Shown in pieces: positions 2,250-49,445 of a DNA stretch of 59,314 nucleotides (its first letter is position 1; every line of letters starts with the position of its first letter). Source of the stretch: Perkinsus chesapeaki ATCC PRA-425 (lineage: Eukaryota; Protista; Perkinsozoa); the NCBI GenBank assembly GCA_013115145.1, contig JAAPAO010000165.1, positions 1 to 59,314 on the forward strand. The letters are read 5' to 3'. The notes under the pieces were generated by a model, which saw nothing but the letters and a program-made list of their open reading frames with translations, had not been told where the DNA came from and made no database searches. Position numbers and translations under genes: made by a program.

Positions 2250-3189
2250 GTGGAGGGGGAGTTGGATAACTTTTTCTGAGTGGAAAACGATGATGTTTGA
2301 AGGTTCTGGTACGTGTAAATGTTATAATACTCATCGGCTATACTATATAACATTATGGCCACAATAGAGCGAAGTTATGAGTCCATCTGTTATACCAAAA
2401 AGATAAACAGGAAGCCTTTGGATGAGCTGCAAGAAACGCAGTATTGGCAATACAAAATTTTCGTGAAACTCCACGGCGGGCAGTCAAACGACGAATAGAA
2501 CGATGATCCTCTACACAGTTCTGTAGCTAGTTTGGCCATATCGGTGACAGATGATCGCTCACGTCACTGGAGCGACATCTTCTCAAGTTTCCTAAAATAA
2601 AGACTCAGAGACTCTTAGTAAGAGTTACGACTCGTCACCTACGAAATAGAACCTATTGACTAGCTCAATGCCCGGTTTCCTGCGGTACCGCACGCTAGGG
2701 GAGGATGGCAAGAGGGACAAAGCACTGAGCGCACTCACGCAGTGTGTGAAGGGAGCCGTCGACCGTTGATAAGTCGGCGTACGTGTCGCATTTGGCCGTC
2801 GCCGTAATTTTTTTATATTCTGCAGTGTATTAGCTTTTGTGGGCAGAAGGTTGTTCTGCACACGTGGAACTTGGTGTCAGCCCAACTTGGGTGGCCCTGG
2901 GCCGTGGGCCACTGGCCCAAGGTGCGTTATTGAAGAAATAGGTTTAAGAAGGTTCGCCAATGCGCTGTCTCCGCGCCTGGGCCCATTTTGTCCCTTTCGG
3001 AATTGGGTGGTTGCGCACTGAAATGAGGTACTACTTCGAGCTAGTGGTTCCCGACATTCTCCCTTCAAGCTTGTCCGTACAGTGTCGGCGCTTTCATTGT
3101 CGACGATTGGATTTGAGCTCACGCACGTCCTAGTGGGACCGTGTTCTCACCGAAGTCCATCGGTTCATACCACTCGTAGACTGGGCAGG

Positions 3190-25400: not shown

Positions 25401-28400
25401 TGTTCTGAGGAATCCTCGAAGATTTCGAGCTCAGGGGTATCTTTCGCACTATAAAGATTCCTTTTCAGAGGAGGATGGCTCGCGTTCAACTTGTTGGATT
25501 CCGTCTCGGTATCAGTATGAAGATTGTGATGCGCTGGAGCCGTGCTATGTAAAGAGTATCTTTACGCACTGTGAAGATTTCTGGCCCTTCAGGTGCGGTG
25601 CCGCTCAGCTGTACCATGCCGTACGGCTCTCTATGGGCCGGACTCGAAGACCACACCGAAGCCAAACCAGGTGGAACCAGTGGCCTGTGCAAAGACGGTC
25701 ATTTGGGGAGCTGATGAGAATAATAATATAGTAAGAGGCGTAGGTTCAATTCCCGGTGGAGGCATCTTTTAGTGTTGGGAATGATTTTCGTTATTTTACT
25801 AATAACTTAATAGTATTGGTCACAGTATTGGTAAATTAAAATTGGTCTGCTTGAATGAGAAAATCAAAAAAGGAAATTTGGAAAATAAAATAGAAGAAAA
25901 ATTGGGAAGAAATTAGAATATAAAAAGAGGAAGCAGTTCGAAGTGACCACTCTCCTCTGTTTTTTCGTGCACAAATCCACAAAGGTGAAGGGGAGCAAAG
26001 ATATATCTATAGACATATTCGCCAGCAGTGCCATTGTGCAATTTGTCCCCTTAGTTTTCCCATTCCTCAGGACTCGGGCTGCTCGCAAACGATATGGTTG
26101 AAGGAGGATCAACCTACTACAGTGCCGCAGACGGCCATCGCGGTTCAACCGTAAGTGATTTTTTGGAAACAAATATTTTTTCTCATCGGATGGTCCCGGG
26201 TTCGATTCTCGGTGAGAATAGGTTTAATGCACATTCTATCGAACTGATGAGAATTTCAGAGAAGGTTAAAAGCTGAAAAGTCAATAACAAATTACCATCT
26301 CAGAAGTTCTTCAACCCCAAATCGTCACGCGCCGTAGAATTATTTCCCATCAGATATTGCGACTGGGGCGGCACTGTATCTCCGGCTGACATAATAGGCA
26401 TTCGTGCCCTCTTTCTCGGGGTCCTTCTGTTCTTGCTAACATATATCGGTGAGTGATTAGTGTAATTAGCGCGCGCCCTGGTGATCGATTTGATTAGGCG
26501 CCGTGTTTGCCATTCGAGTGAACTATAAAAGACGGATGACGACGCACGCGGCGGAATTGGAGATGTTACAACCGAAAATGAACGATGTCCGCGAAGATAT
26601 GCATTCTGTGGTAAGTTTGAAAAATGCCGCCGGTGGGGATCGAACTCGCGTGGATGCTTCAGTTTACTCTGTGCATTTTATTTCCTGAAAGCCCATGGCT
26701 TTCGCGGGTTTTTGGTGTTTAGAATATAACGAAGACGAAAAGCACGACCATATCAATGTAGGCAATTTTTTTCAAAAATTCAAAAAATTTTTTTGCGGAA
26801 AATTTTTCCGGGTATTATGTAACATAATACCAGGAAAAATTTTCCGCAAAAACTTTTTTCTCATATATATCCTACATAATTTATGTAGGATATATATGAG
26901 ACTCTTTCGAGCTTTAATCCGAGAAGTATTTTCACTGCTGTTCTTCCCCCAAAGTATCCGCATAATAACACTATTTCCTCCGGTCCAGGTGGAGCGTCGC
27001 TGGTGCGGTCTGCCAGTCGAAGCTGGTCCTCCCCATGACTCAATGAACCACAACGGCCCGAAGTTCGAGACGGGCAGTTTGCTAGAACTGGTAAGAATGC
27101 ATAGAGCGGTCATTGCGGAATCGGAAAATATCCTTTTGGTGAAATATCTCAAGTGTTCTCGTACGTTTACAATTGCGCGGGTCATATTCTCAACGATTTG
27201 CGGTAGGGGGAATTTTCCCCCAATTTTTTCCGCTAATTTTCGTCAAGCTTACAGGATCCGAAAAGAACTATATTGCCGATGTAGAGTTCAGTGTGAATAT
27301 TAATTTGATAGTATATTTTTAGATCCTCTCAAACTTGCCACCGATGCATCCACTTCGTAAAAATTCATTCGCTTTGGAAAACGCAAAATTTTCGTACAAT
27401 TTGTGACTCCTATTCGCGTGAATTTTTTCCACTTTTTTGTGCATTTTGTGACTCGGTTGATACCTTTTCAGAATACCGCGGCGAAGCCGGGCAAACCTCC
27501 AATGACATCGGCAGATCATAAACGGCGGTGAGAGCATCCCGCGTTCGATCCCTGGTGGAGGCGTTTTTAATATCCAGGTTTGCGTCGGGAAGCTGGCGGT
27601 ATCGTCTGCGTTTAATGGCGGGCTTGCGAGCTCGCAAAAAGGCTATGGTAAGTAGTCTGAATAGTTTCGTGGCGCGCTGGAAAATTGTATGTTTTTTCAT
27701 GATTTCTTCTGCAAATTTTCTCATTCTCACGAATGGTTTGTCGAATGTTTCTACAATCTCCATGTAATCGAAGAAGAATTATTATTTTATATTATATAAA
27801 ATTTTATTAAGATCATTCTTCCTACTTTTGCTAGCCCGCCGTTCATACAACTAAAGTCTTGTTAAATATGAACCGGTATAATATATTATCTCCGACTTTG
27901 ATAATGTTTATTGGTTCTGTTAGGTGGCCTCTCGCATCCGTCACCAAGCTGTTATGATGGGTGTCAGCTATCTCCTGTTGATTGTATCGATTATGTGTTT
28001 GGTCTTGTTGATACAGCCACTCAATTACGTCGAGTAAGGAGTCTAAGGAGTTTTGATTGAATTATTCGAGTTGTGGAGGAAGGCATGCGGATTTCATCGG
28101 CTAACAAAAAAAGCTCTTCCCAGTGTCCCCGAATTTTTCCCCATTTTCGCCAATTTTCCCCAATTTTCCCCAATTTTTTCCCGTCAGTTACGCCCCCCGA
28201 GCGTTTCTCGATCCAATAATCCACCCGGCCACGCGAAATTCAGGCGAAGGTGTCTATGCATGGTTGGACCTGTTGGCATTCAGCGACTATATAGTGGAAT
28301 TTATAGTAAGGAGGCGCGGGTTCAATTCCCGGTTGAGGCGCTTTTATCGCATTTTTCAGGTTCTTACAATCGGTATATTGACGTCAGCGTATAAAATGAA

Positions 28401-31400: not shown

Positions 31401-32831
31401 GGGAGCCTTGTGAACTCTTGTGTAAGTGCATTCGTCTGGAATGAAGGCGAAGGAAATATAATCGAAATGTTGGTGGGGAATATGCTTCTAGGGAAGAACC
31501 AAATACTTTACTTTTGGGCCCTTCTGGGTCTGATGTTCCTCCAGTTTACCTTACTCTTGCGCGGGATGAATAGCGTTAGTACAATACGGAGATCCCTGGA
31601 AAGTCGTGGGTTCGATTCCCAGCGACGGTATTTTTCAGATATTATGCTCTTTGGTGTTTCGGGACCCTTTAAGTTTATTGGTTATGTTAATCGTTCTGGC
31701 CATCTTTTCCTGGCTTCTCGCCCTATTGATTATGGCATCACACAGAAAAGGGTGAGTTTCGAATTCGAAAAAATTAGCTAAATTGCGGTGACTGTTTCAG
31801 ATCATCTCGGATTCGTCGAGCGGGAACAGCGTATGGGTTGCGAGGGTTTCTACTTCATCCATTTTTCCAATTTATTAACTCACTAACGAGGATGGCAGGG
31901 GTAAGAAAATTACGGTAAAAATACCGCCGCCGGGGATCGAACCGGCGCGTGCTCGCCGAGTTTCAAAAGCAGCGGGTGGAAAATGGCTGAGAAGATGAAA
32001 TTGAATCGCTGGCGAGGACCGACTTTCCGGTCGCTCGGTTTTGGTGGAAATTATTATTCAACTAAAAAAATTCAAATTTTTGATGATGAAGTCGCGGCTG
32101 GGATAGGAAAGAGGCGCATGATAAATTTGAAGATGACTGAAAGTTGCTTGTATGCTTTAATGTGTTTCGAGTGCGTCGAAGGATACCAAAATCATAGTAT
32201 TGGAATTCGGCAAAACTTTTTTCGGAAGATTTTTAGGAAGGCGAAGACTTCGGCGACACGGTCGGCGCTTCGTGGCCCTTATCTTTTTAAGCAGCTTAAC
32301 AATCGTCATGATGCTCGATGATGTTGGAGAGAAATTAAAATTTCAAAATTAAAACGAAGTTAAATTGGAAAAGTCAGTTTGCGACGATATCTATCTTACT
32401 TTAATCCTGAACAAAATTTTAATTGGCTTTTCCCCATTTCAAATCGGCCGACTTCCTGGCCCCTGTCCCCTCGCCGAGGATCGAACCCGATACCTCTTCC
32501 TCTCAGCACTTCGTTCTTCTATTTGGTTCGAACTGGCAAGAGCGAGCTCTGACCGGTGATGAGAACTCCCTGCGGGTGGGCCTGCGGGTCGATGACATTC
32601 GAGACATCCCACCGTGCCCGCCGAGCACAGAAGTGGACTGGTTTTCGGTAAGAAGATTTCAGGAACTTTTTCCGACGTTTTACATTTTTTCTGGGGATGT
32701 TCCACGATATTCCTGCCTTGATTTTTTCTCACGCGCCACGAAATTATTTTTTTCAGGTTTGGGCAGGCGCTGGTCCGCAAGGAACTGGTGATCATCGACA
32801 CCATGCAGACCGCGAGATGTCGGAAGACTAG
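22494..32831 (+). CDS. GT2-like (processive glycosyltransferase family 2) multi-pass membrane protein, paralog 1; catalytic motifs degenerate
   Basis: About 30 exons. S/P/R-rich N-terminus (RPPLHPST), TM segments, Cys-containing segment, then QIFVVDCGSG, PDINYSYLPE, RYALIVDDIETVLP, AAVHFPVT, ISLWHRGAL, a hydrophobic C-terminal region and IPPCPPSTEVDWFSVW. TAG at 32829-32831. Colinear with paralogs 2 and 3. Confidence 0.75.
23538..23745 (+). repeat. 33-bp tandem repeat, about 6 copies
   Basis: Unit GGAAATTTATGTGGAAAAAKGCAGGGAAAAGYS with starts at 23551, 23584, 23617, 23650 and 23683. Lies inside a paralog 1 intron. Confidence 0.95.
24717..25022 (+). repeat. 26-bp tandem repeat interrupted by an assembly gap
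   Basis: Unit GACAATGTAGATAATACATTCCAGAG (24725, 24751, ...). About 6 copies before the N-run and about 2 diverged copies after it. Confidence 0.95.
24870..24965. other. Assembly gap (96 N)
   Basis: Run of N inside the 26-bp array, so the true array length is unknown. Confidence 0.99.
26859..26901. repeat. Perfect 43-bp palindrome (21-bp arms, 1-nt spacer) in an intron
   Basis: TCTCATATATATCCTACATAA - T - TTATGTAGGATATATATGAGA. Confidence 0.95.
30086..30212 (+). repeat. 10-bp-periodic A-tract array (GGGAAAAATT)n in an intron
   Basis: About 12 degenerate units. Related arrays at 28130-28181 (complement), 37848-37908 (29-bp unit) and 40187-40286 (20-bp unit). Confidence 0.9.
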
Positions 32832-33138
32832 CAAAATCTTCGCAGTGCGGCGACGCGTATCTTTTGGGGGAGGTTGTTGTTAATAGGAATCTTTGTATTA
32901 TGACTGTTGCATTATTATCACATTTATTGACTTCGGTGGAAGTCTCGAGAACTTTCGAGCCGCAGAAAATAGTATATTAAATCAGACGGTTACAGAAGGA
33001 TGAGTGTTTGGTTTGAGTGAAATGAATGGGCGGAGCGAAGCGATTCATGATTACGGTTTTCGTTTCTTGAAGGGTTTTTGGATTATTTGAGCGGAGCGAA
33101 GCGATTCAGAATTATCATTTTCATCTCTCATTCATCTC

Positions 33139-36100
33139 ATGTCCAGTTCCCGGTCGACGTATCGAGCTCAGGGCTCGTCAGTGAACGACCCAACTCGCCA
33201 GGGTCGACACGCGCGCTCGAGCTCTCCAAACCAGCGAAGTAAGGTATCTTCAAATCGATCGCGTGATCGATTTGAGTTAGCGCCACGAGGGCCGCCTCCT
33301 CGAGCACCCAGCCCTTCGTTTGGGCCGCGTCGACCGCCGTTACACCCGAGCACTCCGAAACTCGCCACTGGCAGTCCAAGGTAAGGAAAGATTTTGGGAA
33401 TTTCAGGAATTTTTTTACGAAAATTGTACGGAAAAACGGAAATTTCATGGGAAAAAACTAGGCAGGAAAGTGTCGGGGAAGGAAAATTGTTCAAGAACAA
33501 CTTTGTCAAGCTTTATTGGGGGAAAGTAAAAGAAATCGCAAAAAAATCATGTTTCGGAAAATATCTTTTCAACGAAAATTTGGTAGTGAAATACATCATC
33601 ATTTTTGTTATTTCCAGACGCGCTTCACCTTCCCGTAAAGCCTCCCCTCCAGCAGCGCCTCCTCTACCGCTGTACGTACAAGAAATTGATAGCGGGGACG
33701 AGGCATCACCACCGCCAGCTGAGATAGACGAACCAAAAGCAAGTAGGCAAGTGGAAAAATGAGAACGTGAAACGCTTCGCTCCGCTAGATTAATGGTTCA
33801 TTCTACTATTGACTGTCGAATGGATTTAGTTTTCCTTTTGATTGTTTTCTCCGTAATTTCTGCAGCTAAAAAATGAGGATTCAATACGTAGTTGACGCCG
33901 CCGGGAATCGAACCTGAATTGGGAATTTTCCGGGAAAATTTCTTTTCTTCAGCTCGAATTCGAGAATCACCACCGAAGTTCCGCAACCGAGCAGATTCAT
34001 TCGGCTCTGACGGTAAGAGAAGTCGATTAAAGTCGTGCGCTTTTCATATGGACCATTTCAGCTGGTGTGAGTGTTGGTGATTTTCCGAACGATATTACGT
34101 CGGATGGAGCTGCCATGATGGTCTCAGCGGCAACTACTAAGGATGGATCGGTTAGGATTGGCGAAACTCCTATGGAGGAGATGATGCGTCATGAGAGGAA
34201 GTAAGGGTATCTTGGAGTTGAGCGTGCAAGATCCGAATAAGGTTGGATTGGGTGGTTTTCAGGTATTTCCGGAGCACATTGCCGAAGAAGTTAGTCAATC
34301 CTTGTGGCTGTTTCTGTCGAATAGTTTCCACTGTTATATGGATCGTAAGTTGGAGATGGTATCTTTAGGTTGAGCGTGCAAGATACTAACTAAGTTAACT
34401 TTCTCTCAGGCCATATCTATCATCGTGAGCGCATCTGTATACACTCAATCCACAGGGTGGGTTGAAGGCTTAACATGCATCCAACCGGCCCATACATACG
34501 GCGCTGTTCCGGGATACTCCAAGGTGGGAAAATTTTCCCGGAAAAAATTCCGAAATTTTCCTATTTCAGGTTTTTGCTGCATGGGATGTCACTGGTACCC
34601 ACGACACAATCGAAGGGACAAGGTGCCGCGTTTGGTTTCAATTCGACCCGCGGGTTGGAGTGAGCCAAACTGCCGTCAGAGCCATCACTCAGTACAGCAT
34701 CGATACTGGTGCCTTGTGTGGTAAGAAAATAACTTTGCGAAAATTGGGCACAAATTTTGTCGTCGGAACTCGGGAGAAACTGTACTTCTCCCCTGGAATT
34801 TTACCGGTATTTGTTATGAAAATTTTACGGAAAAATAATAAAAATAATAAGTTTAATTTGGATTCCGGATAACATTTTTTTGATTAATCTCGTATTTTTG
34901 GTATCTCGAAAAAAACTAAATTCTCCGAAATTTTCTCGCCGAAATTCCGCGGAAAAACTTTTTTCCGAAGAAGTTTTTCCAGAAACTTTTTCGCAGGCTA
35001 TTACAGCGAAGATGAATTTGGTGGCGATTGCGCTGGTGGGCACTGCTGGACATGCATCTCGAGCATCCCGTGTACGCATACGGTGGGGCAATCAGTTCCT
35101 ATTGGGGAAGACTCAGAGGTTAGTTGGACTGATCAAAGGTGAGTCGATGAAGAATTTTGGGGAATTTTCGGGAAATTTCCGGGAAAAAAATCCCGGAAAA
35201 AGGTGTGCCCGCGAGTGAGGAGAACGGTGAAGCTTTTGAAAGGATGTGCTATGGATAGAGCTGAACGAAATGGTCTCTGTTTTTTCTACTGCTTCGTTGG
35301 TTCATCTTAATATTAATTTACCATCAAATGATTTTTCGTGGTTTTTTATATTTTTTGTAGGTGGCTAATTTAGTGGCGCGTGACTCTACTATCAGGTTTC
35401 CTGTGTTCTATCCGAACTCATCTGCCCCACCGCTGGAGCTCCGTATGGATGATGACCATGAAGTCATCGTCAACAACGCTGTCATTGGACTCGAGCCGGT
35501 TTGTTCGGTTGACGGGAATGTAGGGAAATGTAGGCGGAGCGAAGCGATTCATGTTTCACATTTTTAGGTTACTCCTGGGCACATTATAGTAGTTCAGGGA
35601 TTCATTATCACTGGAATGTTACTTGTCTTGTTTGTTATCATCAGAGAAATGTATCTTTGGGTAGGTTGGGATGTGTGGTATCTTTGCGCACTATAAAGAG
35701 TTCTCATGGGTATCTTTTGCGCACGAGGAAGAATTTACGCGGGTATCTTTGCGCACTATGAATATTTTAGTATCGACTTTACGCGGGTATCTTTGCGCAC
35801 TATGAATATTTTAGTATCGACTTTACACGGGTATCTTTGCGCGCTGTGAAGATTTTCTGTTTTTAGTGGTGTAAAATTCAACAGAATCATAAGCGAGCAG
35901 TCGACTGTTCTGTAATAGCGTGTCACATGCATGAAGTAAGAAGAGAGATGCGACGGCGAGTAGAAGGACAATGGGAGACAGAGGCCGTTCGGTACCTATC
36001 TCAAATCGATCACGTGATCGATTCGCTTCTCAGGCGGATGGTGGACTCCCAAAGGCATGCTGAAAGTGAAGGCGAGCGACGGGTATGGGTTCCAGAGCAA

Positions 36101-39100
36101 TTTTGTGGCGCGCGGTATTTATGTTTCTATTTCAGGACGGAAGCTTATCGCCGGGCGCCAGAGGCTTTTCCGCTGACCAGGATTCCCCGTCTGGTCTCCG
36201 GTCGAATGTCCAGCGTCATTTTGAGCACGGGTGCTTATGCGTGCTAGTTTTATTCATACCAAATTTTGGTATACTTTTAGGAGTATATTGAGTCATGACC
36301 CGAGTCCAACGGCAATGCTGGCACGAGCACATTCCACGACAAAGTTTGGGATTGGTTAGATTTGGAGAATCTTCACAGTGCGCAATGAGTATCTTTAGGT
36401 GCGATGAATCCACTCTGTCGAGACCGTGCTGCTGGTTGGGATGTTCAGGTTAAAAACATGCGGGTGAGTTTTGTGGAATGGCGGGAAATTTCAGAAAAGA
36501 GAACAAAATTTCCGGAAAAACGGAAAATTTCCAGAAAAAAAACGGAAAATTTCCGGACAAAAACGTGTTCGCTGGCAAGTAAACAGTGGGAAAAAATGAC
36601 AGACGTGGGGAAATTTTTTCAAGATTTAAGATTTTTCCGGTATTTTTCCTGTGACAGGTCGGACTACGACGACGGCAGAGGACTGCGTTAGTTCGAGGCG
36701 TGCTGAAGACGATGATACGTGCATTTCTGTAGGAGTATCTTTGCGCACTGTGAAGATTTTTGTGTCAGTTTCCTCATTCTTCATATCTTGGCTTGTCTCT
36801 TTGTATTTGCCGTTTCTCCTCGACAACTGTTCGATTCATCTTGGTGGAGTGAGTTGAGAAAATGTAAGTGAGAGTAAGATTGTAAGATTTCAGGTATATT
36901 GGATGCTGCCAGAGGCATACAGCAGGTCGGGACGGGGTCTCCTTGGGTATTCACGGATTTGCTCGTCCTTGTGGACGTTGCCTTGTTGATTTTGATGGCG
37001 ATTCCATCTGCAGTGCGGGCTAGTTGGTAAGGGGGTTGGTTCAGGCTTCGGAAGGTTGCTGGTTCAATTCTCGGCGGGGCTATGCTCACTTTAATTCATT
37101 GCAAATTTGCCGAGTTTGATTTCTTAGGTGGCCTCGAGGTGACTTTAAGTCAGACAGGATGACATCCTCAGACGCCCCGACCAAGCGAGCCCATGAATTT
37201 AGTCCACTTGACAAGAGTAAGTCACGCGTTGAGGAAATGCAAGATTTGCAAGGCTTCGCAAGAGGGAGTTATACTAATAATTGAATACTTGCTAACCAAG
37301 GCTACATCTTCGCACATAATCGTCGGGGGAATTTCATTTGTCGAAGTCAGGAAAATTAGAAAAATTTCTCCTGTATGAAAATTTCGTCATAATTTTCTGC
37401 CCGTGTGTGGGTGTTCGTGTAGTGCGTGGGAGGACGAAAACTACTGTCAACGAGTTGGAAATCTTTTGAAATTTTCGGGTTCGGAAGTATTCCATTTTAA
37501 TTTTCAGGCGCGCGACAAATGACGGTGGTTGACCAGGACGTATGTGTTATAATTGTCATTCGCAGCGGGAGCTGCGCAGATTTTACAAAACGCAAGCGAA
37601 TCGCTAAATTGGTCCGCAGGTAAGATCGTAAAATCTTCGCAGTGCGCAAGGAGTATCTTTAGGTGTGAGAATCTTTTCCCGTGTGAAGCTCCAGGATTTT
37701 CACGAGTATTTGTGGTGGATCATGGCACAGGGTTGATGCCAGCTGATGACTGTTGGAAGATGCTACAGGTGGGAATATTCCAAATCGATCACGCGATCGA
37801 TTTCAAGCATTCTGTCTCTGGAACTATTCTACTGTAACTTCCCGGGAAATGATATTTTCGCGGAAATTTCCCGGGAAATGATATTTTCGCGGAAATTTCC
37901 CGGGAAAAATGACCAAAGCCCCTTGGCGTGGAAATCGCAGTAGAACAATCGATGAGGCTTGTACACAAAATTCTGTCCCTCGCGTACTAGTTAGATAACA
38001 ATGCTCATCCGGCATAGGAATTCATGATAGTAAATTAATACATTAAATAATCCTCGGGGTGATTCGAACCTCTGCCCTTTCCGTTGTAGGACACAGTATC
38101 TCCCCATATTAACTACGCTTACCTGCCTGAAGATGATAAGGCAGTTGCCATCCACTGGGCCAACAAATCCTGGGTCTCGTCGCAAGTTCGACGATATAAT
38201 GCCAACACTAGCGGACCCAAAGTCGCGATGTAAAAGACGCGGGAAAATTTCGGGAAATTTCGGAAATTTTTGGCAGTTTTCGCTACGCCATGGTAATCGA
38301 TGATGTCGACGGGGTTGATGATTTTCTGTTGCCCACCTCGATGGACGTGGATGTTAAGGTGAGCGTTGAGGAACTGCAAGATTGGTCAAGATTGCAAGAT
38401 TCCAGGAGATTGCCAGTAAAGGTGTTAATTTGGTTTGGTTCCCCTCGACGGTTCGACCGGTTGTACAGGGACAGGATCAATCAGTTTGGGTTGACGATTA
38501 TTTATTAAAGAAAGATTCCATGTAAGTACAGGGTGCGCACTGCGAAGAATTTGCGCATGCGTGCAAATATTCGTATCTTTTCGTATTTACCGCATAGAGA
38601 CAATGGCTTATTATCGTAACTGTATTGATATGATACCTGATCGTTCTGGAGAGAGGTGGAAAGTAGATCGCTCGAGGTTGATTGGCAGGAATACAGAGAT
38701 TTACTAAAGTTAAAAAAAAACCTTCTTTTAATTAATCGCAGAATTTTATCGGGGGAAAATTAATGTATGAATAAAGAACTATGGCGGTTGAGGGAGGGCA
38801 AAGGGCGTCCTGGTCGGGAATGAGAATCTTGATTTGTCAGGTTTTTCTCGATTCAGGTTTGAAATATAATTCGTAATAAAATACCATTTTTCAGAGTTTC
38901 GTTAACTCAAGAGAAGTTGGGAAGGTCGGCGGTGGTGACACCCCAGAAATGTGTGTGCCTTTGGAATCGCAGAGTGCTATATGAAGTGATGGAGAGGATG
39001 AGTGGATCTGATGGGGTAAGGGAAAAAATATTCTGAAAAAAATTTTAGGCTGGAAAGTTGCGGAAAAATCCTAGTGGATAAGATTTTTTGCGAAAATTCG

Positions 39101-40785
39101 AAAGCAGTGGAAATTTTTTCCCAAAATTTTCGAATTTCTCCGGAAAATCGTTTTTTTTCAGAAGGACATGACGAATGCCGAGCTAACTCAGCGAATGTCG
39201 ATCGAACAGATGAAAATGAAGGGAGCATCCTCGATGATGGCAGCGCCACAGGTGGGTTACAAAAATCGATCACTTGATCGATTCGTCTGTGTGGTTGGTG
39301 ACCAGCTGATTGCTTGGGTGCGTTCCTGGTGCGAAGATAAAATTGAAATGATTTTCCGAGTGAGTGACAGGAAATCACTTTGGTTTGGAAGCGTTAGATT
39401 GCGATTAGTATAGTCTCAAGCGTTACAGATGCGGTTGTGGTGACCGGGTGTGGGGCAAAGTGGTTCTAAACCGACGTCTATTGAGAGGAATGGTTGGCAA
39501 TTACGAATTTTTATCGAAGAGGAAAATTTTTGGGCTGGCAAGATTATTTTTTACTCTGTATAATAGTCTTACTGATCAATCGTGATTTTTTTAATTTTTT
39601 TGGAGTGTGGTATTTTTCAGGTTCGTGTTACAAATCATGACCAGTTTGGTTCGCACTGTAGAGAATGGAGGATACTCTGCACCTTAATGTTAGAATCCAT
39701 CAACCCCTTTGTGTGTACAGCTTCTAGGTGGGGACAATTTGCACAATAAATTTGCACGCGTGCGCACGTTTGTGCTTTTCTTCAGATGGGCAGCCAAATT
39801 ATGGATTTTGCTATATTATGTTGTACCCGCCTTCTTCATTATCACAAGGTAAGCAAAAATTCTCCCAAATTTTCCGGAAATTTTGTTTTTTCCCTCAGGC
39901 CTTTTTACCTCGGAACACTATTGTTAAGAGCTCCAATCGATATTCCGATCTTGTTGGCAGTAAGTATAAAAAGATATTTTTCGAGGTTGAATAGTGACCT
40001 ACGCGGCTGTATCCAACTTTATAGAAGGTCTTCTGGCTCTCCCTGGATTTTCTCAAAAAATATTTTACCTAAACTTACTCTTTCCCTCTTCCTCCGATTT
40101 CCCTGAGGATTTTTCCGTTTCTCTTTCATTCCGAAGTTCCTCTTCTTGCAAAATTTCTCATCTTCCTGAAATTCCCTTATTTTTCGTGAAATTTTCCCAT
40201 TTTTCCTGAAATTTTCCCATTTTTCCTGAAATTTTCCCATTTTTTCCGAAATTTTCGCATTTTTCCCGAAATTTTCCCATTTTTCCCACCTCAGATATAT
40301 TATGTAATTCTAAACGTGCTCTCCGTTTCCCTAACTCTCCTGGCCCTCCGCAAGCGCCCCGAAATCAAACGCCATTGGACCATGTAAGCCGATAGTAGCA
40401 AATCGATCATCTGGGCGAGCGCTTTTGTCAGCCCTCTCCTGCTGTTTGTATTACCGCTGTACAAATTGGCGTATGACATTGCATATCTTCATACCAGCCT
40501 TTTTCACACAATGTTCAAATTGTGTGCATCTTACCCATCTATAAGGGAAGGGGAAAAGAAGGTAATAATCTTGCAATCTTGCATTTTCTCAACGCTGGTA
40601 TGCCGCTTCAGCCTTGTGGAGCGGGAGTGCCGCCGTTGCCGGGAAGCTCTACGGTTGATTGGTTTTCGGTGTGGGTGACCGAGGACGAAATCGAAGTTCT
40701 GAAGGGCCGCGGAAAGTCAATTCATAAAAGCGGCGGGGCGGTTTGGGTTGCCCCGGAGAAGGGGAGTAGGGGTAGTCGATTGTAG
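33139..40785 (+). CDS. GT2-like multi-pass membrane protein, paralog 2
   Basis: MSSSRSTY..., RPPLHPST, RVFVVDHGTG, PHINYAYLPED, RYAMVIDDVDGVDDFLLP, VCLWNRRVL, TM exons and VPPLPGSSTVDWFSVW. Stop at 40783-40785. Confidence 0.75.
35734..35854 (+). repeat. 44-bp tandem repeat (about 2.7 copies) built on the TGCGCA element
   Basis: TTTACGCGGGTATCTTTGCGCACTATGAATATTTTAGTATCGAC starting at 35734, 35778 and 35822. Confidence 0.9.
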
Positions 40786-43700
40786 AAAGTAGCGGAGAAG
40801 TCGGTATGAACAAATTTGCACGCACGCACAATATTGTACATTATCAACGTCTTGTTTAGCGAGCGGATTGTCGCTCATATTGAAAGACGAATATGTAGTG
40901 GAGTAGGAAAATCTTTATAGTGCGTAGATGACGTATCTTTGTATGGCAAGGCAGCAGCAGCAGTAATGGTGTGTAGTGCTGTATTGTTGTTTTCTATTAC
41001 GTTTCATAGACATCAGACAAGTCAATCACAACGTTAACTAGTATTGGTTTTGAGTTGTGGGTGAAATCGATTAGATGATCGATTTGGCGGGAGAAGGAGT
41101 ATTATGGGGATGAAATCCTTCCAGAGGGGTTCTCTGCCATCTGCTGGAATATTGTTATGGTGGAGGTCGACGAAGGCTCCCTACTCCAGTGGGAGCGTGT
41201 GATGAATAATAGTCTTCAGTCCAGGCTGGGCTCATAGGCCTTGGGAGCAGCCCCGAGCGGCTTTCGTGGGAAGGGCATTGCGACTCCGATAGTAGGCTTT
41301 TGAGGCAGGGAGTGATATAGTAACATCAGATGTTTCCAGCAGGAATGCGTTACAAATTTCCGTTTGGTTTTGAAAAATTTCCGTCGGGTCCGGGAAAATT
41401 TCAGTTTAGGAATAGTCGGTGATCTCTCGGGAACACATTTCTGAGAGGCCAGAGACGACTTCCAGTTGTGAGGTTTTGTGTCGGTGGATTTTACGAGTAC
41501 AAGGTGACTCAGAAAATGTGCTTGATAAATTCCTAAGAAGGGTGGCACGTATGAGGTTCGAAGGCTCTCAGAAATTACTTGCTATTGGTTGACGGCCCAT
41601 GATGATATTTGATGGGGTTGGCGAGAAATGTCGATTTTAAAATTCCCAAAGTATCAGTTAGAATGGAAGAGGTAAGCGTTTTATAGGCTTTGGTGCGTGA
41701 GATTAAACGGGGTTTGGGTTTTCGGGTTTTCGGGTTTTCCGAGGTACCGGTTAATTCAGTATTTGAGTTGTCCTTACCGGGAATGGAACCTGGTTCGTCT
41801 GGACAAGAAATGGAGAACGGAGGAGAGGATCGATTTATGATGGCATCGCCGCATCATACGGGAGGACACAGAAGGGTGGCGCACACGCCTGCTGGCCATT
41901 CGCCGGCGGTGGACCCGCGTAATTGTGGGGAAGGTGGATCCTTCATTTGCAACAGAAAATTGAAGATATGCTTTTATATGGTCGATGAGGTTGTTGTTGA
42001 TATTTGGAAATCATTGTATTGTCCGATCAGGGTGGGGCTGGTGATAATGGACAGGGAGCGGTCGTGGATGAATTTCGGAACTTTGCTACTATACAATTTT
42101 ACTATAATATTAAAACACAGGAGAACTTAATTAAAAATAGATTACTCTTTTCTAGGACGATTACACAGTGATTAGGAAGTGATAGCCATCAGTCTCTGTG
42201 TCGGGGTAATAATTGCTCGATATGAACGCCTCGTAAACCTGGAATGCATCGCTGGGATATCATTCGTGCGTACATATGTTATTATAGGGTTACCGCCGGC
42301 AATTGCCCATCGAAGCCCGCGTAGTCGGCCACCACTGCATCCCAGTACACCTAGGAGGAGCAGGCCGGGGATGTCGAGCCCGAGAAGGTAGTGTGGGGAA
42401 ATATAATGATGTTCAAAGTTGGATGGTTCTTCTAGAAAGCTTGTGATAATTACTTCTCAGTAGGGTTTTCAAGTAGCATATCTCACATAGGGGCATTTGG
42501 TTGATTGATTGATCGAAGACTCCATTTGATTGTCTTTTTGTATTCGTCATAGAATAAATATTTGGGAATTTGCGTTATCTTGAAAAACATTTTATGTTGA
42601 TCGGTGGAGCTGCTACTGTCCAAAGGTGGCCTGAGACTTGGTTGAAATTTGATTCAAGGCACCAAGTTTTCTGAACTCCTCAATATGGCCATCTGTGTAT
42701 GTCTTTCTCTCTTGCTATGTTATGAGGGAAGGTCGTGACTTTGTTACAGAGCACGCGTGGAGCGCTGCTTGATGGAGTCTTAGTAGTAATCGATATCGAC
42801 CAGTACTATCGTACGGCATAAGTTGTATTACAGTGAAAGCAATCGAGTCGGTAAACTACATCGAATCTAAAATATAAATACATTAATAATTAGTAACATG
42901 TTGATTGTTGATATCATCACGAACGGAAGTGTAGTGTGAATGGATATCACTTTTTATAAACTGGTTGTGTATTTTACGTTGACTTACCCCCGCAAATGCT
43001 TCCCATTCGACGGACGATCTTCCTCCATGAAAAATACCTGTTATTTTTCTCGGCATGGTCTTCCTTGATTTGTTATCTATGTCAGTTGGGCTCAGACAGG
43101 AGTGGAGTCACGGTCGCAGCAACCGGCGCAATCATCGAGTACTACGCCCAGCACGGCGGTAGGCGAAGTAGTGGTGGTCGAGCAGCAGCAGGGAGCGGAG
43201 GGGGGCTTAGACGAGGGTATGGATGCCATGGGGCTCGAGGAAAACGATCTGATGAAACGAGAAGGAAAGGCGGCAGGTGAGCTGGTGTCAGGGGGAGGGT
43301 CTTCGGTGGGGTGGGAATGTCGTTAATTACTCAACGATCGCCGAACAAAGCGAGTCCAACGGATGACTCTGATGGTTTCTGGAATAGCATTTTAGGGGAC
43401 TTTGAACAGCAACTTCTAAGGGTGGGCTTATTGATGGAATCTTCCTTTAATGTTACCTTTTACGTTATATAAGTTGTAAACCACGGGGCTTACCGAGTCG
43501 AGGAAGCCGCGAATACGGCGACCAGAGTACTTTTGTGAGCTGTGGGAAGAAGTGGACCTATTCTGGTTGATATCGCCTCACGGAAATATGGGAGGAGGGG
43601 GCTATAATGGGGATTTCGGTAGGAGATATGCTCCTAGGGCGGCATCGAATGCATCCCTTCTGGGCGGCCTAACATGTGATTTTCCTCCCTTTTTTACCTT

Positions 43701-46700
43701 GCTCTTTTTTCAATAGCGCGTTGCAAAAGTCCCTGCAAAGCCAGTGGAGAGTAAACGACAGTAAATGATACCTTTCAGGAAACACAAGCTCAGATGACTC
43801 CTTTTTCGAGGGAGAGTATTCCAGTCCGGTTCCGGCGCGGCAACCTCGGATAGAAGTGCCTCGGTACAGAGCGGATACGTTTCGATCTGATGGGGGTAAT
43901 TTCGTGGCGCGGTGACTGTCGGCTGCTGATAGTCTTCACTAGGTGATTCGGACTTCAATTCGGATGCGGAAGGGAGCGTAATGGGTGATGCTGATTTGGC
44001 TGGTCGACGAGGGCGGGTGGTCGGGCCGGCTATGGTGGCATCTGATAGGAGTTTTGGGGCTATACTGAAGCAGGAACGACAGTAAGTTGGTAGGGAGAGT
44101 TGTTTCTAACTGCAAGTGAACGGAGCAGTTTGGCACTGTGCTCGCTCAGTGGCTGATGCTGAAACTCGCATTAGTGCGTGGAAGGCAATTTGGAACGAAT
44201 ACTGAGTTACGAAATTGGTTCGTTGGACGCTGCAATGGATATAACGTGCCCACCAGAGTGCACCCTCATCTGGGCGTGACTGGAGTTGCCCAAAATGTAT
44301 CACATTGCTTATTCATTTCGTATTATGCTCATGATTATTATCCGCTCAAAAGGTCAGTGGTTTATCATTCTCATTATCGGTGATGCTTTGCTGATTCTGT
44401 CGTCAAGGTACCTCCTGTCACGTACTCCTCCGCCGTTCCTCTCACCCCTGCCTGAAATACTTCGCGTCATCGGTTCAATAATAGCATTGATATTAGCAGT
44501 CGGCGTGGCAGTTACAGCGATGGTGGGATCAATAAATTGGATAACTGCACTCAACTGCCCGTATCCGGTAAGATATCCAAATCGATCACGCGAGCGATTT
44601 GTTTTTTTAGGCTATACCGTTTGCTGCTAGCGAGAACATAGACGGTCTCTACTGTCGAGTGAGGGTATCCTACTCTAGTGTGACCCAGCAGCAGCAGGAT
44701 TGGGCTACGATCTACAGTCCGTACACGACAAGCGTAGCGAACCGCAATGGAAATTTAGGCTGTAAGTGTGTGAGTGTTTCGAGCGCAACAAAAACAATCA
44801 ACGAATTGGTGAAGTCTCCGGCAAATTCCCGAGAAATAGGCGCGTAAATTTGTGCGGTATTTTTTGGATGTTAGAATAGAAATTTGTCTTCAGGAAGGTC
44901 CCTGGTTCGATTCCCACAGTTGTCGTTTTTAGGTACGCAGATTAGCAATAATGAAGTTAGTTGTCTATCGGCCATTCCCTGTGATTTCGCAGTACAACTG
45001 TCATCGGACGGCACTAGTTGTCCAGCCAATACCATTCTCTGGACTGAAGGAGAGTAACCGATGCCTGCCGCAGGTTCATTTCATACCACATTTCCCTCAG
45101 ATTTAATGACAACATATTACCTTTTGGTGGCTCTTGCCAGTATCTTTTGGCCCTCGATCTTCAGCAGTATCTAGTTTCCGGCGCTGGTATAAGCGTTGAG
45201 CCTTTCTGCACAGCAAACGGCGACGTCCCACCGGGAAAAGTATTTGTTGGATTTCGTGGCGCGTGAGAAATTTCATTTTCAGGTGATTATAGCAAACGCC
45301 TTATTGGTACTTTGTGCCGGTTGGGTTATCTTCATCGTGATTGGCGAAATACGAGTCTACGTAAGAAAGTTGAAATAGCGCGCGAGTTGGTGATCTATTG
45401 TGTCGTCTCGGGGGTTTGTTCGCGTAGCAGTTAATCGATCACGCGATCGATTTGTTAACTCAGGTTAAACGACAGAGGAAAGCTCGGCTTGAAGAGGTGG
45501 ATAGGAAAGTGATGGAGCCGAAACTCCCTGGTGTAGGTTTCAATTTTGTGGCGCGCGTGAATTTTAATCAGGTGCACGCGGCATATCGTCGTCGAGTACA
45601 AGCCAGTTGGACCGAGCAGGCTAATCGGGAGCACAGAAGGTTAATGGAAAAACAAGTGAGAGCGAAGGCTTGATTTTCAGATGGGCGGGTCTGCCTATAT
45701 CAAATATAAAACATTTATAGTTTATATTTTCGGTATAATTCTTTGAGTCGCGCAAAGCTGTGGGGAATTTGGCCTAAATCTAATGTAAATTCTTACTTTT
45801 TTCTCAATCTTCATTCGGCTCCTTGAGGTGGAGGAGGGACTCTTGATTTTCATCATTTCGCGAAGTTTGTAAAAAGCGAGCGTTTCGCTATCGATGCCCC
45901 GTTTTTCAGGCCGAGGAGCAACATAGCGACACAGATTCCGTGAAATCTCCGCAGTCCGTCTTCTCGGTTGATTTGGATTCTCCTTCTGGTCTGAGGAGCA
46001 ACGTCCATATGGCGTTCGAGCACGGAAACTTACAAGACTTGGCTGGAGGATTGGTAAAGACGGTTGATGAGAGTGGTGAGTAGGAGGGGAGGGCTTTAGA
46101 ATATATATACCAAATTACGCAGAGGAAGTCGGTGAGCATGAGGAGGATACAAGGCACGGAAAGCTCCAGTGTTGGAGTGTCTAAGTTTCCAATGTTGCTC
46201 GGGCAAGGAAATGTCGATGAAGTTTTATTACATTGCTTTGCTCGATTTTTGCATGTTCCCCCCACTATCAGGGAGTGCACCCCCTACAGCGATCTTCCTT
46301 AGCAGACAGTTCACGCCTCCATCGCATCTACTCGATGATCGAGTCTCGATCATCTTCCATATTCAGAGACCCTTGCTGCTGTAGTATCTCTAGCTTCAAC
46401 TGTCACGTTCGATCGATTGATTCTAAGTATTTGGCCTGCTATTCTTGGCGCGCGGGAAGACTATGCTCTATATTATAGAGCCATAATTGCCCTCCTTTTA
46501 TGGATCTACCTTCAGTATAAATACCATGAAATAGTATATACTATTGTTTCCTGATTTTTTCCACAAGAAATCTCGCAATTTACTTGCTCGCGGCTGAGCG
46601 TTTTCACTAGTTCGTATAAAGATTCTCGCCTCCCGTCTCAGATGTGCATGAGCTTCGCTCCGCTGAGGGTATGTAACTTTTCGGCCTCAGGAAACCCGAT

Positions 46701-47712
46701 ACATCCGTACGCTCGATTTCAAAGTAAAGAGTGGCGTGCGAGAGTATCCGTGGCGTTATTGGAGATTCGATACAGAGCCAAAATGGCCGTCAAACGAGGA
46801 GTTCTGTATTGGTCTTTAACGATGGTTTTGTAAGCGAAAGGTCCCTAGTTCGATCCTCGGCGGAGGTCTTTTTATCATTTAGGGGATGGATTCTACTGTT
46901 CCTTTGCTGCCTTCTTGTGGTGGGAGTGTTCCCGAATCAGATTTATCAGAATTCTGGTAAACTGGACTTACTGGATTATATAAACAATGGGGCTGATGGA
47001 GGTGAGGATATCTTTGAGGTTGACCATGCAAGATACGAAAAATGTTGACTACCGAATGATGATCCCCTTGCTAGAGATCCTTAGAGGAGTTCTTATTCTG
47101 TGCCGCGTGTTACCCGAGTTCCGATGGTTTTTTGTTCCTGCGAAATAATTACAAAAATCTTTGTATTTTCAGAGTCAGTGCCAGCAGTCGCCGTGATCGA
47201 CTGGCTGGTAATTCTCGACGGCCTCATTCTCACAATTCTCGCCTTCCTTCCAGCTCTTCTCAGTTCACGGTAAGCATAATCTTGCAATCTTGCACTTTCT
47301 CAACGACGGTTCTCATCAGCTGGCCGTCATTGCCGACAGCTAGGCGATCTAGTGCTGGTCGCAGCATGTCTGAGAGTGGCAATCCGGTGGCGGCGATAAA
47401 TCGAGAAGAAATCGCAGATGAAGATGTTACGGACGTCTGCGTGATCATGGCTCTGCATAGTGGCTGCTGCACTGACCCGATAAAGAGGGCTCGCGTCCGA
47501 AAGATTCTGCGGAGGTGAAAATCTTCGCAGTGCGCAAACGTATCTGAAGCTTGAATTTAGGTGTACATCTCTGTTTCCTCCAAAAGTTCACGGTTGTAGT
47601 CCGATTTTCGTCGTGGAGGTCGGCAATGAATTAGCACCAGCAGACGATTGCTGCAAAATGATTCAAGTAATAAAGAAGGATCTTGCAATCTTGCTCGTTC
47701 TTGCATTTTCTC
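36853..47712. repeat. Dispersed intronic element AATCTTGCAATCTTGCAYTTTCTCAACG
   Basis: Forward at 40567, 47278 and 47680. Reverse complement at 36853-36889, 37227-37252 and 38364-38401. Confidence 0.85.
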
Positions 47713-49445
47713 CACGCTTGTTTAGGATTCTGTTTCACCGGATATTAATTATGCATATTTGCCTGAAGATAACAAATCGATGGCGATTTATTGGGCTAAC
47801 AAATCCTGGGTCCCATCCGTACTGAGATACGCGAATCCTCAGGAGAATCGCAATTCCGCGTAATAATCGATCGTTTGATCGATTTGCAATTTCGTATCAT
47901 GGTTTCAGATTTCGGTATGCTTTGTTGATTACCGATGCGGATTCGGATGATGATTTGATGTTGCCAGTGGCGCTTGATTTGAACACTCAGGTGAGTCATG
48001 TGGAAATAAAAATATCCTTCCACTGGGAATCGTACCGGAGTCGTTAGCTTACAAGAAGAGCATAATACTCACTCGGCTGTTTTGACTTAGGATTATAGAC
48101 GCCATGGAATCAAGGTCGTCTGGTATATGCCAACAGTCCGCGGTGTGAGCAACATGCCTCTGGTGACTATGGAGGATTACATGGTCAAGCAGCGAGCTAT
48201 GTAGGTGTTTCTTTGTAAAACGCGCGCATCCAGATGATCGATATTTCTCAGAATGTCATTTACACAGGAGAAGCTGGGAGGATCATGCGTGGTGACTCCG
48301 CTGAAATCGGTGATGTTATGGGATCGAGCCGCTCTTCATAGAACTCTCGCTGGCTTTATGGGCATTAATGTAAGTCCTATTTCGTGGCGCGTGACGATTG
48401 CAAGATGTGGCTGCGGTAGGCCGATGATGCTCCTGGATTCCTACAGCCATCGTTGATGATGGATCGATACCTGCGGCATGATTTTGAAACTTCGTTAGGA
48501 GGCAGTCAGGTAGCCCGGTGACCTCCGTACAGCCGACCCAAGCTCGATCCCGGGGTGGTTCATTTTTATAAAAGTAATGTTGTGCTTGTCTCAGATTCGT
48601 ACAGACACCGGGAGCAACCATTTTTCTTCCGAGTGCGCTCGTTGGTATCTTCGGTTGAGAATCTTCTCTGTTGTATTTGCCCCGACTGTCCGCGTGAAAG
48701 GTTGTTGTTCTCGAGAAGCTATTGTTGGTCGAATCTGGTCGTTTTTTGCTGACATAGTGCCGACAGTGATGATCATATTGAGGTGAGCATCATCTGTAGC
48801 TACCGAGGATTGAACTCGGGGTTGTTCGCTGACGAATCTTGTTCTTTAACTTTAGGCCATTTCTTCTAGTTTCAATATTTCTTCGGCAGCCCGCCCTTAT
48901 CGGTGTATATTTTGGTATATACTTTGTAGTCTTTCATGGAATATCTGTAGCTTTAATGGCGATAACGTTGCGTAACCGACGAGACGTTCGCCGGCAATGG
49001 AGTAAGACCACGCTTTTCTGGCTCTCAAATCAGCACATCGCTCTACTCTTCAGACTGGTTCGTGGCAACCGTTATGTTGCCATTCTATAAAATCTACCAG
49101 TACGTCATGGATGTCTATCCGGCGCTCCTTCACGTTATGTTCTCTATTCGTAAAATACCAGGCGGCCGTCAGAATATGCATACGGTAAGTCCGTATCACC
49201 ACTCTAACGGTTAAGTTTCGTGCTTGACTTGCTAACAATCATGAGTTCGATTCCATGCCACGGTTTTCATAAAATACAGAGTCGTTGTTTCTCAGGGAAC
49301 TTCAGTCCCTCTGCCGCCTGCTAAGGACGTTGACTGGTTCACCGTGTGGAAGTCAGGCAGCGACACCTCCGCGTCGAACATTCCTGGGGACATCGATGAC
49401 ACTGACCAGAAACGGCGAGACAAGAGGAAGAAGGCACGCCGCTGA
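41783..49445 (+). CDS. GT2-like multi-pass membrane protein, paralog 3
   Basis: MEPGSSGQEMENG...HHTGGHRR (matches paralog 1 NHTGAHRK), RPPLHPST, PIFVVEVGNE, PDINYAYLPED, RYALLITDADSDDDLMLP, VMLWDRAAL, SECARW, TM exons and PLPPAKDVDWFTVW. TGA at 49443-49445. Confidence 0.75.

Follow-up and report, generated by a model that had tools for sequence, protein, structure and literature searches.

A 22-bp palindrome in the tiny introns of Perkinsus chesapeaki as a putative binding site for a dimeric protein

Introduction

The E-box/G-box CACGTG and the Drosophila DRE TATCGATA are palindromic sites of fixed spacing that are used by dimeric proteins. Mirtrons are hairpin introns that are processed into microRNAs. 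Introners are introns in which the whole intron is the repeat unit, often with direct repeats at the boundaries and with lineage-specific insertions, and the introners of Amoebophrya feature boundary repeats and are strain-specific (PMC7789003). The subject of this work is a 22-bp palindrome that recurs in and near the introns of a 59,314-nucleotide contig of Perkinsus chesapeaki ATCC PRA-425 (assembly GCA_013115145.1, contig JAAPAO010000165.1), referred to below as the window. Perkinsus is the sister group of the dinoflagellates and is close to the apicomplexans. The window looks like intron-rich eukaryotic DNA, and its palindromes lie in two genes, termed A and B, and between them.

An earlier note on this DNA, made from the sequence alone, described the palindrome as the core of a family of hairpin mini-introns that is or was mobile, and gave a conserved palindromic protein-binding site as the alternative. 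The analysis described here favors the alternative. The palindrome is read as a putative binding site, under selection and with a fixed spacing of its half-sites, for a dimeric sequence-specific DNA-binding protein, and this reading is given a probability of roughly 0.55. It is most likely an old conserved signal and not an intron-creating jumping element. No paper was found in the literature searched that mentions the 18-mer formed by the two arms or intron palindromes of Perkinsus.

Anatomy and genome-wide distribution of the palindrome

The palindrome unit consists of the inverted 9-mers AAATCGATC and GATCGATTT with a 4-nt spacer between them, and it has two sites each for GATC, TCGA and ATCGAT. 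The eight copies first described between 33.2 and 47.9 kb of the window are all real: a pattern search found the palindrome at 33252, 36003, 37782, 39263, 41064, 44579, 45432 and 47864 with 0–3 mismatches each, where none is expected and 100 shuffles gave 0 matches. These copies are spaced 0.85–3.5 kb apart and are spread across 15 kb. The copies at 33252 and 37782 do have opposite orientations, as had been claimed, with the centres CGCGTG and CACGCG, respectively.

The genome-wide count that the earlier note had proposed was done on a 41.7 Mb assembly of 3544 contigs, in which the window is contig C716. Both 9-mers are perfect at 78 sites, and the number increases to 268 with up to one mismatch and to 415 with up to two mismatches, whereas the control, which was the same pattern written backwards, gave 0 sites at every mismatch level. 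The spacing of the two arms is invariant, because a search that allowed spacers of 0–12 nt returned only the same 78 perfect sites, and the spacer is 4 nt in 78/78. The copies are also clustered. The first 50 perfect sites include 12 pairs at most 25 kb apart, compared with about 1.5 expected by our own arithmetic, and 21 further copies were found in approximately 180 kb of flanks around the sampled copies.

The anatomy of the unit was determined on a sample of 62 copies from 242 kb, which comprises the window and the fetched loci. The information content is 1.1–2.2 bits per position within the 22 bp and at most 0.11 bit at the first base outside, and since the copies were picked by similarity to the consensus, the sample inflates the conservation seen inside the unit but not that seen outside it. 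Position 10 of the palindrome is only A or G (100:24) and position 11 is mostly C. The choice of A or G at position 10 is independent between the two halves: in our own count, made on the 50 perfect sites among the matches listed, the combination of A in one half and G in the other occurs at the frequency expected from independence.

The half-site is AAATCGATC plus a purine. Its genome-wide count is 1110, versus 82 for its control. Additionally, the half-site is shared by two composite motifs, AATCGATCA-N3-GGGCGMGCG with 157 copies and AATCGATCAACCGTTTCAT with 114 copies, and the controls for both gave 0. Tiny introns are filled by both composites too, and the orientation to the host gene may be sense, as at 40401 of the window, or antisense, as at 6287 of locus L038. 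The palindrome thus displays three features expected of a site for a dimeric protein: the half-sites have a fixed spacing, the halves vary independently and the half-site is recognizable both alone and with other partners. Composite AATCGATCAACCGTTTCAT also forms short tandem arrays, with five copies 54–153 bp apart at C2639:8693-9032 and three copies 32 bp apart at C2857:15695-15777.

The palindrome could alternatively be a structural or processing signal of the DNA, such as a site of cruciform formation, of replication or recombination, or of DNA modification by an enzyme. The perfect dyad, its nested short palindromes and its recurrence along a 15-kb domain of the window are what such a signal might show; however, composites that lack the dyad reuse the half-site, which favours recognition of the sequence over recognition of the shape, and a structural role is very doubtful.

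The palindrome resembles the E-box/G-box and DRE sites in its dyad symmetry, strict spacing and independent halves, in its heterotypic half-site composites and homotypic clusters, and in the similarity of the ATCGAT and CACGTG cores. It differs from them in that the half-site is about 10 bp long and nearly invariant, and in that the copies are mainly intronic and often make up half of a 40-nt intron. Perkinsid AP2 domains are analysed alongside apicomplexan ones in PMC4117751. The ApiAP2 systems of this alveolate lineage, in which AP2-domain proteins are the main sequence-specific regulators, are a lead only for the Perkinsus palindrome.

Positions of the copies and their retention in relatives

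A permissive intron caller placed 22/62 sampled copies inside introns of 35–61 nt, which are found in different genes and have good GT/AG contexts. In these 22 tiny introns the distance from the palindrome to the donor is 3–22 nt and that to the acceptor is 2–25 nt. With a looser tiny-intron criterion 55% of the palindrome copies pass, and this number is to be read against the looseness of the automatic caller, which passes 17% of random windows. The remaining copies are in longer introns, close to one end, or are not intronic.

Locus L009 (contig C802) displays most of these situations in a small space. One copy is located about 20 nt before the ATG of a gene for a Trm14-like THUMP methyltransferase. 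An in-frame copy at 2482 may be coding rather than intronic, because Trm14 aligns from the F of FKVETQRKG. Another copy is in a 42-nt intron with an in-frame TAG, and the spliced product GVM/VLLT fits the Trm14 strand GVFITT. One further copy follows the stop codon, one occupies the 3' end of an intron in the next gene, and three copies are found within one intron of about 170 nt. In the same locus, a composite of the half-site and GGGCGAGCG is located inside a methyltransferase coding exon (2282-2306, minus strand), where it encodes RIDQSGERK; a relative keeps this peptide as RIDQSGGRK, which may be chance or an exon-embedded motif.

Relatives were compared through open reading frames (ORFs) of a public assembly (Logan) that read through introns, and these ORFs, P0001 and P0002, offer three comparable places. 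P0002 shares 57% protein identity with the methyltransferase ORF of L009 and has the peptide IDHVID at both palindrome places of that gene, one of which is the 42-nt intron. At the first place P0002 reads EIDHVIDF and P. chesapeaki reads KIDQVIDF. At the second place, which follows the shared exon end GVM, P0002 reads VSEIDHVIDL and P. chesapeaki reads VIIDHLIDL; here the distances to the donor are one codon apart, and the central four bases are not shared. The palindrome intron of L009 is thus also present in P0002, and because this segment is intronic, only conservation of the nucleotide sequence explains the kept peptide. The third place is in gene B, where P0001 has 80% identity to the exon up to 44567 and then continues for 38 codons into an intron that begins there as well, without encoding the palindrome peptide. 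The palindrome is therefore kept at 2/3 comparable places, a small sample, and the third has the intron and no palindrome in the readable stretch. A scan of prokaryote genomes gave nothing, and one bacterial gene that encodes EIDHVIDF, which was seen in a metagenome scan, was set aside as a chance match.

Host introns in genes A and B

Orthologues of the window genes were found by a representative-protein search with a window exon as the query, and such hits are in keeping with a Perkinsus genome. They are P. olseni hypothetical proteins, namely KAF4748047.1 (P0003) and the longer models P0007 and P0013. These proteins align exon by exon with gene A (33.1–40.8 kb) and gene B (43.8–49.4 kb) at 55–98% amino-acid identity. 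The introns described here are predictions, judged from the alignment of P0003 and P0013 and from the reading frames; exons were joined only for frame checks and for one local alignment.

The coordinates of the palindromes, the composites and their host introns are collected in Table 1. Four of the five mini-introns of the earlier note (33239-33280, 35992-36033, 44568-44610 and 47860-47908) match gaps or junctions in the P. olseni proteins. The fifth was given as 45424-45463, which cannot be a stand-alone intron because of an in-frame TAG at 45376; the orthologue fits a donor at 45361 and an acceptor at 45463, and the palindrome is located near the 3' end of this longer intron, of which the interval in the earlier note is the 3' part. 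The two further donors that had been proposed next to a palindrome, at 37769 and 39252, are real and open introns of 321 and 369 nt, and the copy at 41064 does lie between the genes. A mini-exon proposed at 39306-39359 was ruled out by the direct junction in P. olseni that is given in the table.

Table 1. Palindromes, composite motifs and their predicted host introns in the window, with the corresponding introns of the paralogous genes.
Feature	Position	Strand	Palindrome or motif	Evidence from P. olseni and reading frame	Paralogous intron
Gene A, N-terminal 42-nt intron	33239..33280	+	Palindrome 33252-33273, centre CGCGTG	NQR/TPRG matches SPAQRTPRS; 14 codons absent from orthologue	
Gene A, 42-nt in-frame intron	35992..36033	+	Palindrome 36003-36024	14-residue gap exactly there versus P0003	No B counterpart; B exon 45572-45655 continuous through homologous residues WTEQANREHRR
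Gene A, 321-nt intron	37769..38089	+	Palindrome 37782-37803, 13 nt past donor		B 47667-47725, GCAAGAT-type word; C 29081-29434, within 2 codons, palindrome absent
Gene A, 369-nt intron	39252..39620	+	Palindrome 39263-39284, 11 nt past donor	AAPQ joins VRVTNHDQ directly	B 48510-48594, tRNA-end-like unit
Gene A, 48-nt intron	40384..40431	+	Composite: half-site AAATCGATCA then TCTGGGCGAGCGCT; family of 157 copies versus control 0		
Intergenic, between A and B	41064..41085	.	Palindrome, degenerate centre	About 280 nt past gene A stop and last P0003-mapped A exon	
Gene B, 43-nt intron	44568..44610	+	Palindrome 44579-44600, one arm mismatch	NCPFP/AVPFAASEN; removal joins two open frames	Probably A 34524-34570, GGAAAATTT-type word, as at A 38230-38276
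Gene B, 103-nt intron	45361..45463	+	Palindrome 45432-45453, 10 nt before acceptor	Reads GEIRFYVNRRKK across 45360/45464	A 35661-35866, tandem GGTATCTTTGCGCAC units
Gene B, 49-nt intron	47860..47908	+	Palindrome 47864-47885, 4 nt past donor, centre GTTT	Phase 2, one residue before FRYA	A 38230-38276, same phase and residue, GGAAAATTTCGG-type word
Second window copy of composite	26470..26490	-	Half-site plus GGGCGCGCG, from composite motif searches		

The tiny introns that carry a palindrome are 42–49 nt long and the neighbouring introns that carry other motifs are 39–59 nt long. As the palindrome introns are no longer than their neighbours, the palindrome replaces other intron sequence and is not added to it. 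The ORF at 37553-37837 gave no match in a protein word search, and Pfam searches with single exons of genes A and B, which are too short for the purpose, also gave no match. A look for an allelic contig gave none, and the matches elsewhere in the genome were confined to short intron repeats. Additionally, P0013 (2116 aa) spans both gene A and gene B (window 33139-49400), so that either the tandem order A-B is common to both species or the two are read as one gene in P. olseni. The gene B exon at 45907-46071 (AEEQHSDTDS...LVKTVDE) is unusually constrained, with 98% protein identity to P. olseni where the neighbouring exons have 40–75%.

Age of the host introns and the case for a mobile element

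Gene C, at 29 kb, is a third copy next to A and B, and the three are paralogues of old divergence whose aligned exon blocks share 38–70% amino-acid identity. The intron positions at 37769, 39252, 45361 and 47860 are each common to a paralogue, and the relative P0001 also has the intron at 44568. Judged from these alignments, at least four of the host introns are older than the A/B duplication. The only position specific to gene A is that of 35992-36033, which may reflect a gain in A or a loss in B. The earlier note had proposed such an alignment as a test of recent intron gain, and most positions turned out to be shared. Almost all tiny introns of A and B contain a motif from a small recurrent set, and the motif differs between homologous introns of the paralogues. 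The shared positions mean that most host introns predate the palindromes or that the paralogues have lost the palindromes.

The surroundings of the palindrome were compared across the 62 copies, and no shared flanking sequence was found beyond the 22 bp. Direct repeats at the boundaries, which the earlier note had proposed to look for at the exon junctions, did not appear above background: flanking repeats of at least 2 nt are present in 3–11% of the copies at four boundary offsets versus 9% in a control in which left and right flanks from different copies were paired. No longer parent element that bears the palindrome at its ends was seen in the 242 kb. The family is a bare 22-bp dyad without transposon marks or shared splice-site segments. 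The palindrome also does not fit the formula of a hAT footprint, which was tried as a candidate shape.

These results bear on the possibility that the palindrome is a miniature mobile element, either back-to-back terminal inverted repeats or an introner, that inserts into genes and is able to found introns. Such an element would provide the copying mechanism that about 415 near-identical 22-mers need, and the local clustering of the copies resembles local hopping. It would also account for a palindrome that varies in presence between paralogues at one intron position, for the intron 35992-36033 in gene A with no equivalent in paralogue B, and for the relative that has no palindrome at the 44568 position. 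However, the copies lack target-site duplications and a longer parent, they share nothing past the 22 bp, their distances to the splice sites vary and their host introns are no longer than the neighbouring tiny introns. Further evidence against insertion is that four or more host introns are older than the A/B duplication and that, at 57% protein identity, two orthologous places retain the palindrome. A mobile element is consequently an improbable explanation of the family.

The comparison with described elements gives the same picture. The palindrome introns are like the introners of Micromonas, Aureococcus, fungi and Amoebophrya, the last from a lineage close to dinoflagellates, in that similar short introns with internal inverted repeats are found at unrelated positions. 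Unlike introners, the Perkinsus introns share 22 bp and not the whole intron, they have no boundary repeats, and old host introns, retention across species and copies outside introns are found in place of recent gain. A reading as an introner or other intron-creating element, and with it the mobile mini-intron family of the earlier note, is not supported: the shared part is a core of 22 bp that floats within introns or lies outside them. The arms could pass as the 11-bp terminal repeats of a miniature inverted-repeat transposable element (MITE), but the unit has only 22 bp, no duplication accompanies it and no longer element was seen in 242 kb.

Hairpin formation in RNA

Every copy of the palindrome can fold in RNA into a 9-bp stem with a 4-nt loop. 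The folding calculation that had been suggested with the original description gave predicted stems of 8–12 bp with a 4-nt loop and energies of -8.5 to -14.9 kcal/mol in introns of 42–54 nt, with z-scores of -1.1 to -4.7. The palindrome may accordingly be an RNA stem-loop in the pre-mRNA that helps very short introns to be spliced, controls their splicing or is bound by an RNA-binding protein. Most copies are intronic, many of them adjoin a donor or an acceptor, and a palindrome gives an identical hairpin from either strand, all of which would suit a role in RNA. Several observations point the other way. Copies are also located upstream of a start codon, downstream of stop codons and in intergenic DNA, and the half-site is used in composites that are not palindromic and occur in both orientations to the gene. 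The arms are almost invariant, which leaves few changes to compare, and 0/4 of the copies with double mismatches in the 62-copy sample are compensatory, a small count. Where a gene strand could be assigned, 4/4 of the C-to-T/G-to-A changes in the closing pair, again a small count, give C.A and not G.U in the sense RNA. Additionally, the preference for a purine at position 10 would fall in the loop. An RNA hairpin is thus unlikely to be what has kept the palindrome.

The likeness to mirtrons is limited to a short intron that is made mostly of a hairpin. The palindrome differs from them in its stem of 8–12 bp, which is too short for Dicer-type processing, where about 20 bp or more is expected, and in the copies outside introns.

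Other recurrent motifs in the introns of the window

The introns of genes A and B also carry words of other kinds. A second intron motif family has GGTATCTTTGCGCAC followed by a GTGAAGATTTT-like word, and it is found in both orientations at 35680-35860, 36715-36760, 37625-37665, 47520-47550, 32830-32870 and 34350-34400. Four tandem units of this family are located in the intron 35661-35866, and it is kept in the homologous introns A 37621-37666 and B 47517-47561, the flanking exons of which are only about 50% identical. Elsewhere in the genome the family is found at 85–87% identity over about 50 nt. The word TTTYGTGGCGCGYG, which is like an E2F site, is present in many tiny introns of both genes (36100-36118, 43900-43915, 45250-45266, 45545-45562, 48380-48396 and 35372-35388).

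Words like the 3' end of a tRNA (GGTTCGAWYCC-type, B-box-like) are found in introns in both orientations at 29572-29590, 32470-32490, 37050-37075, 38055-38075, 44900-44925, 46843-46866, 48545-48560 and 48800-48822, and ARAGORN found no tRNA genes in the window. The palindrome is like these words in being a short motif of tiny introns that is used in either orientation. It differs in its sequence, its dyad symmetry and a half-site common to two composites, and the two presumably involve different factors.

A GCAAGATTGCAAGAT-type direct-repeat word is located in the tiny introns at 38370-38406, 40563-40590, 47280-47305 and 47680-47705, and its genomic copies are 92–95% identical over about 40 nt. 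The word GCGGAGCGAAGCGATTCA is found in introns at 33028-33048, 33088-33108, 35530-35565 and, in reverse, at 33768-33790, with genomic copies of 33–36 nt that are 97–100% identical. The interval between genes A and B contains a dispersed repeat of about 130 bp (41546-41676), which has at least 20 copies on other contigs at 74–82% identity and may be a short interspersed element (SINE) or a MITE.

A proposed binding site for a dimeric protein

Recognition of the palindrome by a dimeric protein would bring these observations together. The palindrome would be a cis-element that is recognised in double-stranded DNA, most likely by a sequence-specific protein that binds as a homodimer; its two inverted half-sites, each AAATCGATC plus a purine, stand at a single spacing. 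Copies would cluster in particular loci, and selection would retain them while the surrounding intron sequence turns over. Most copies would be intronic because the genome is compact and most of its non-coding DNA is intronic. Binding might serve the control of chromatin or transcription at the clustered loci, although this function is a guess. That a protein recognises the motif, that recognition takes place on DNA and not on RNA, and what the binding achieves are all inferences. The alternative offered in the earlier note, a conserved palindromic protein-binding site, fits the strict spacing, the independent halves, the reuse of the half-site and the retention across species, and is upheld here as putative.

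Several points weigh against a binding site. The binding protein is hypothetical, and an information content of about 36–38 bits greatly exceeds what ordinary transcription-factor sites have. The perfect palindrome alone cannot separate a DNA site from an RNA hairpin. Retention was seen at only two orthologous sites, and at the 44568 position the P0001 intron encodes no palindrome peptide over its first 114 nt, so that sites turn over. Finally, about 415 near-identical copies are hard to make by point mutation alone, and as point mutation is unlikely to yield so many 22-mers, some copying process must have seeded them. A copying process is likely, and the phrase "is or was mobile" may therefore still apply to the origin of the family.

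A tentative extension, less probable than the binding site itself, is that the tiny introns are slots for a repertoire of docking motifs in the DNA. This repertoire would include the palindrome, the two half-site composites, the B-box-like tRNA-end units and the GGCGCG-type words; the introns would be kept partly as carriers, and the motifs would be exchanged by some copying process.

Significance

If the palindrome is a binding site, Perkinsus would place very long and highly specific protein-docking sites in minimal introns and keep them across species, which would offer a reason for the persistence of so many 40-nt introns. The 22-bp site and the half-site composites would be usable as probes to fish out the binding factors. 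For P. marinus, which can be grown in culture, a Cas9 RNP method has been published (PMC8062965). The finding also carries a caution, namely that intron families that look like introners can be selected signals. For Perkinsus, in which promoters and regulators are almost unknown, the palindrome would provide a handle on the control of genes and chromatin.

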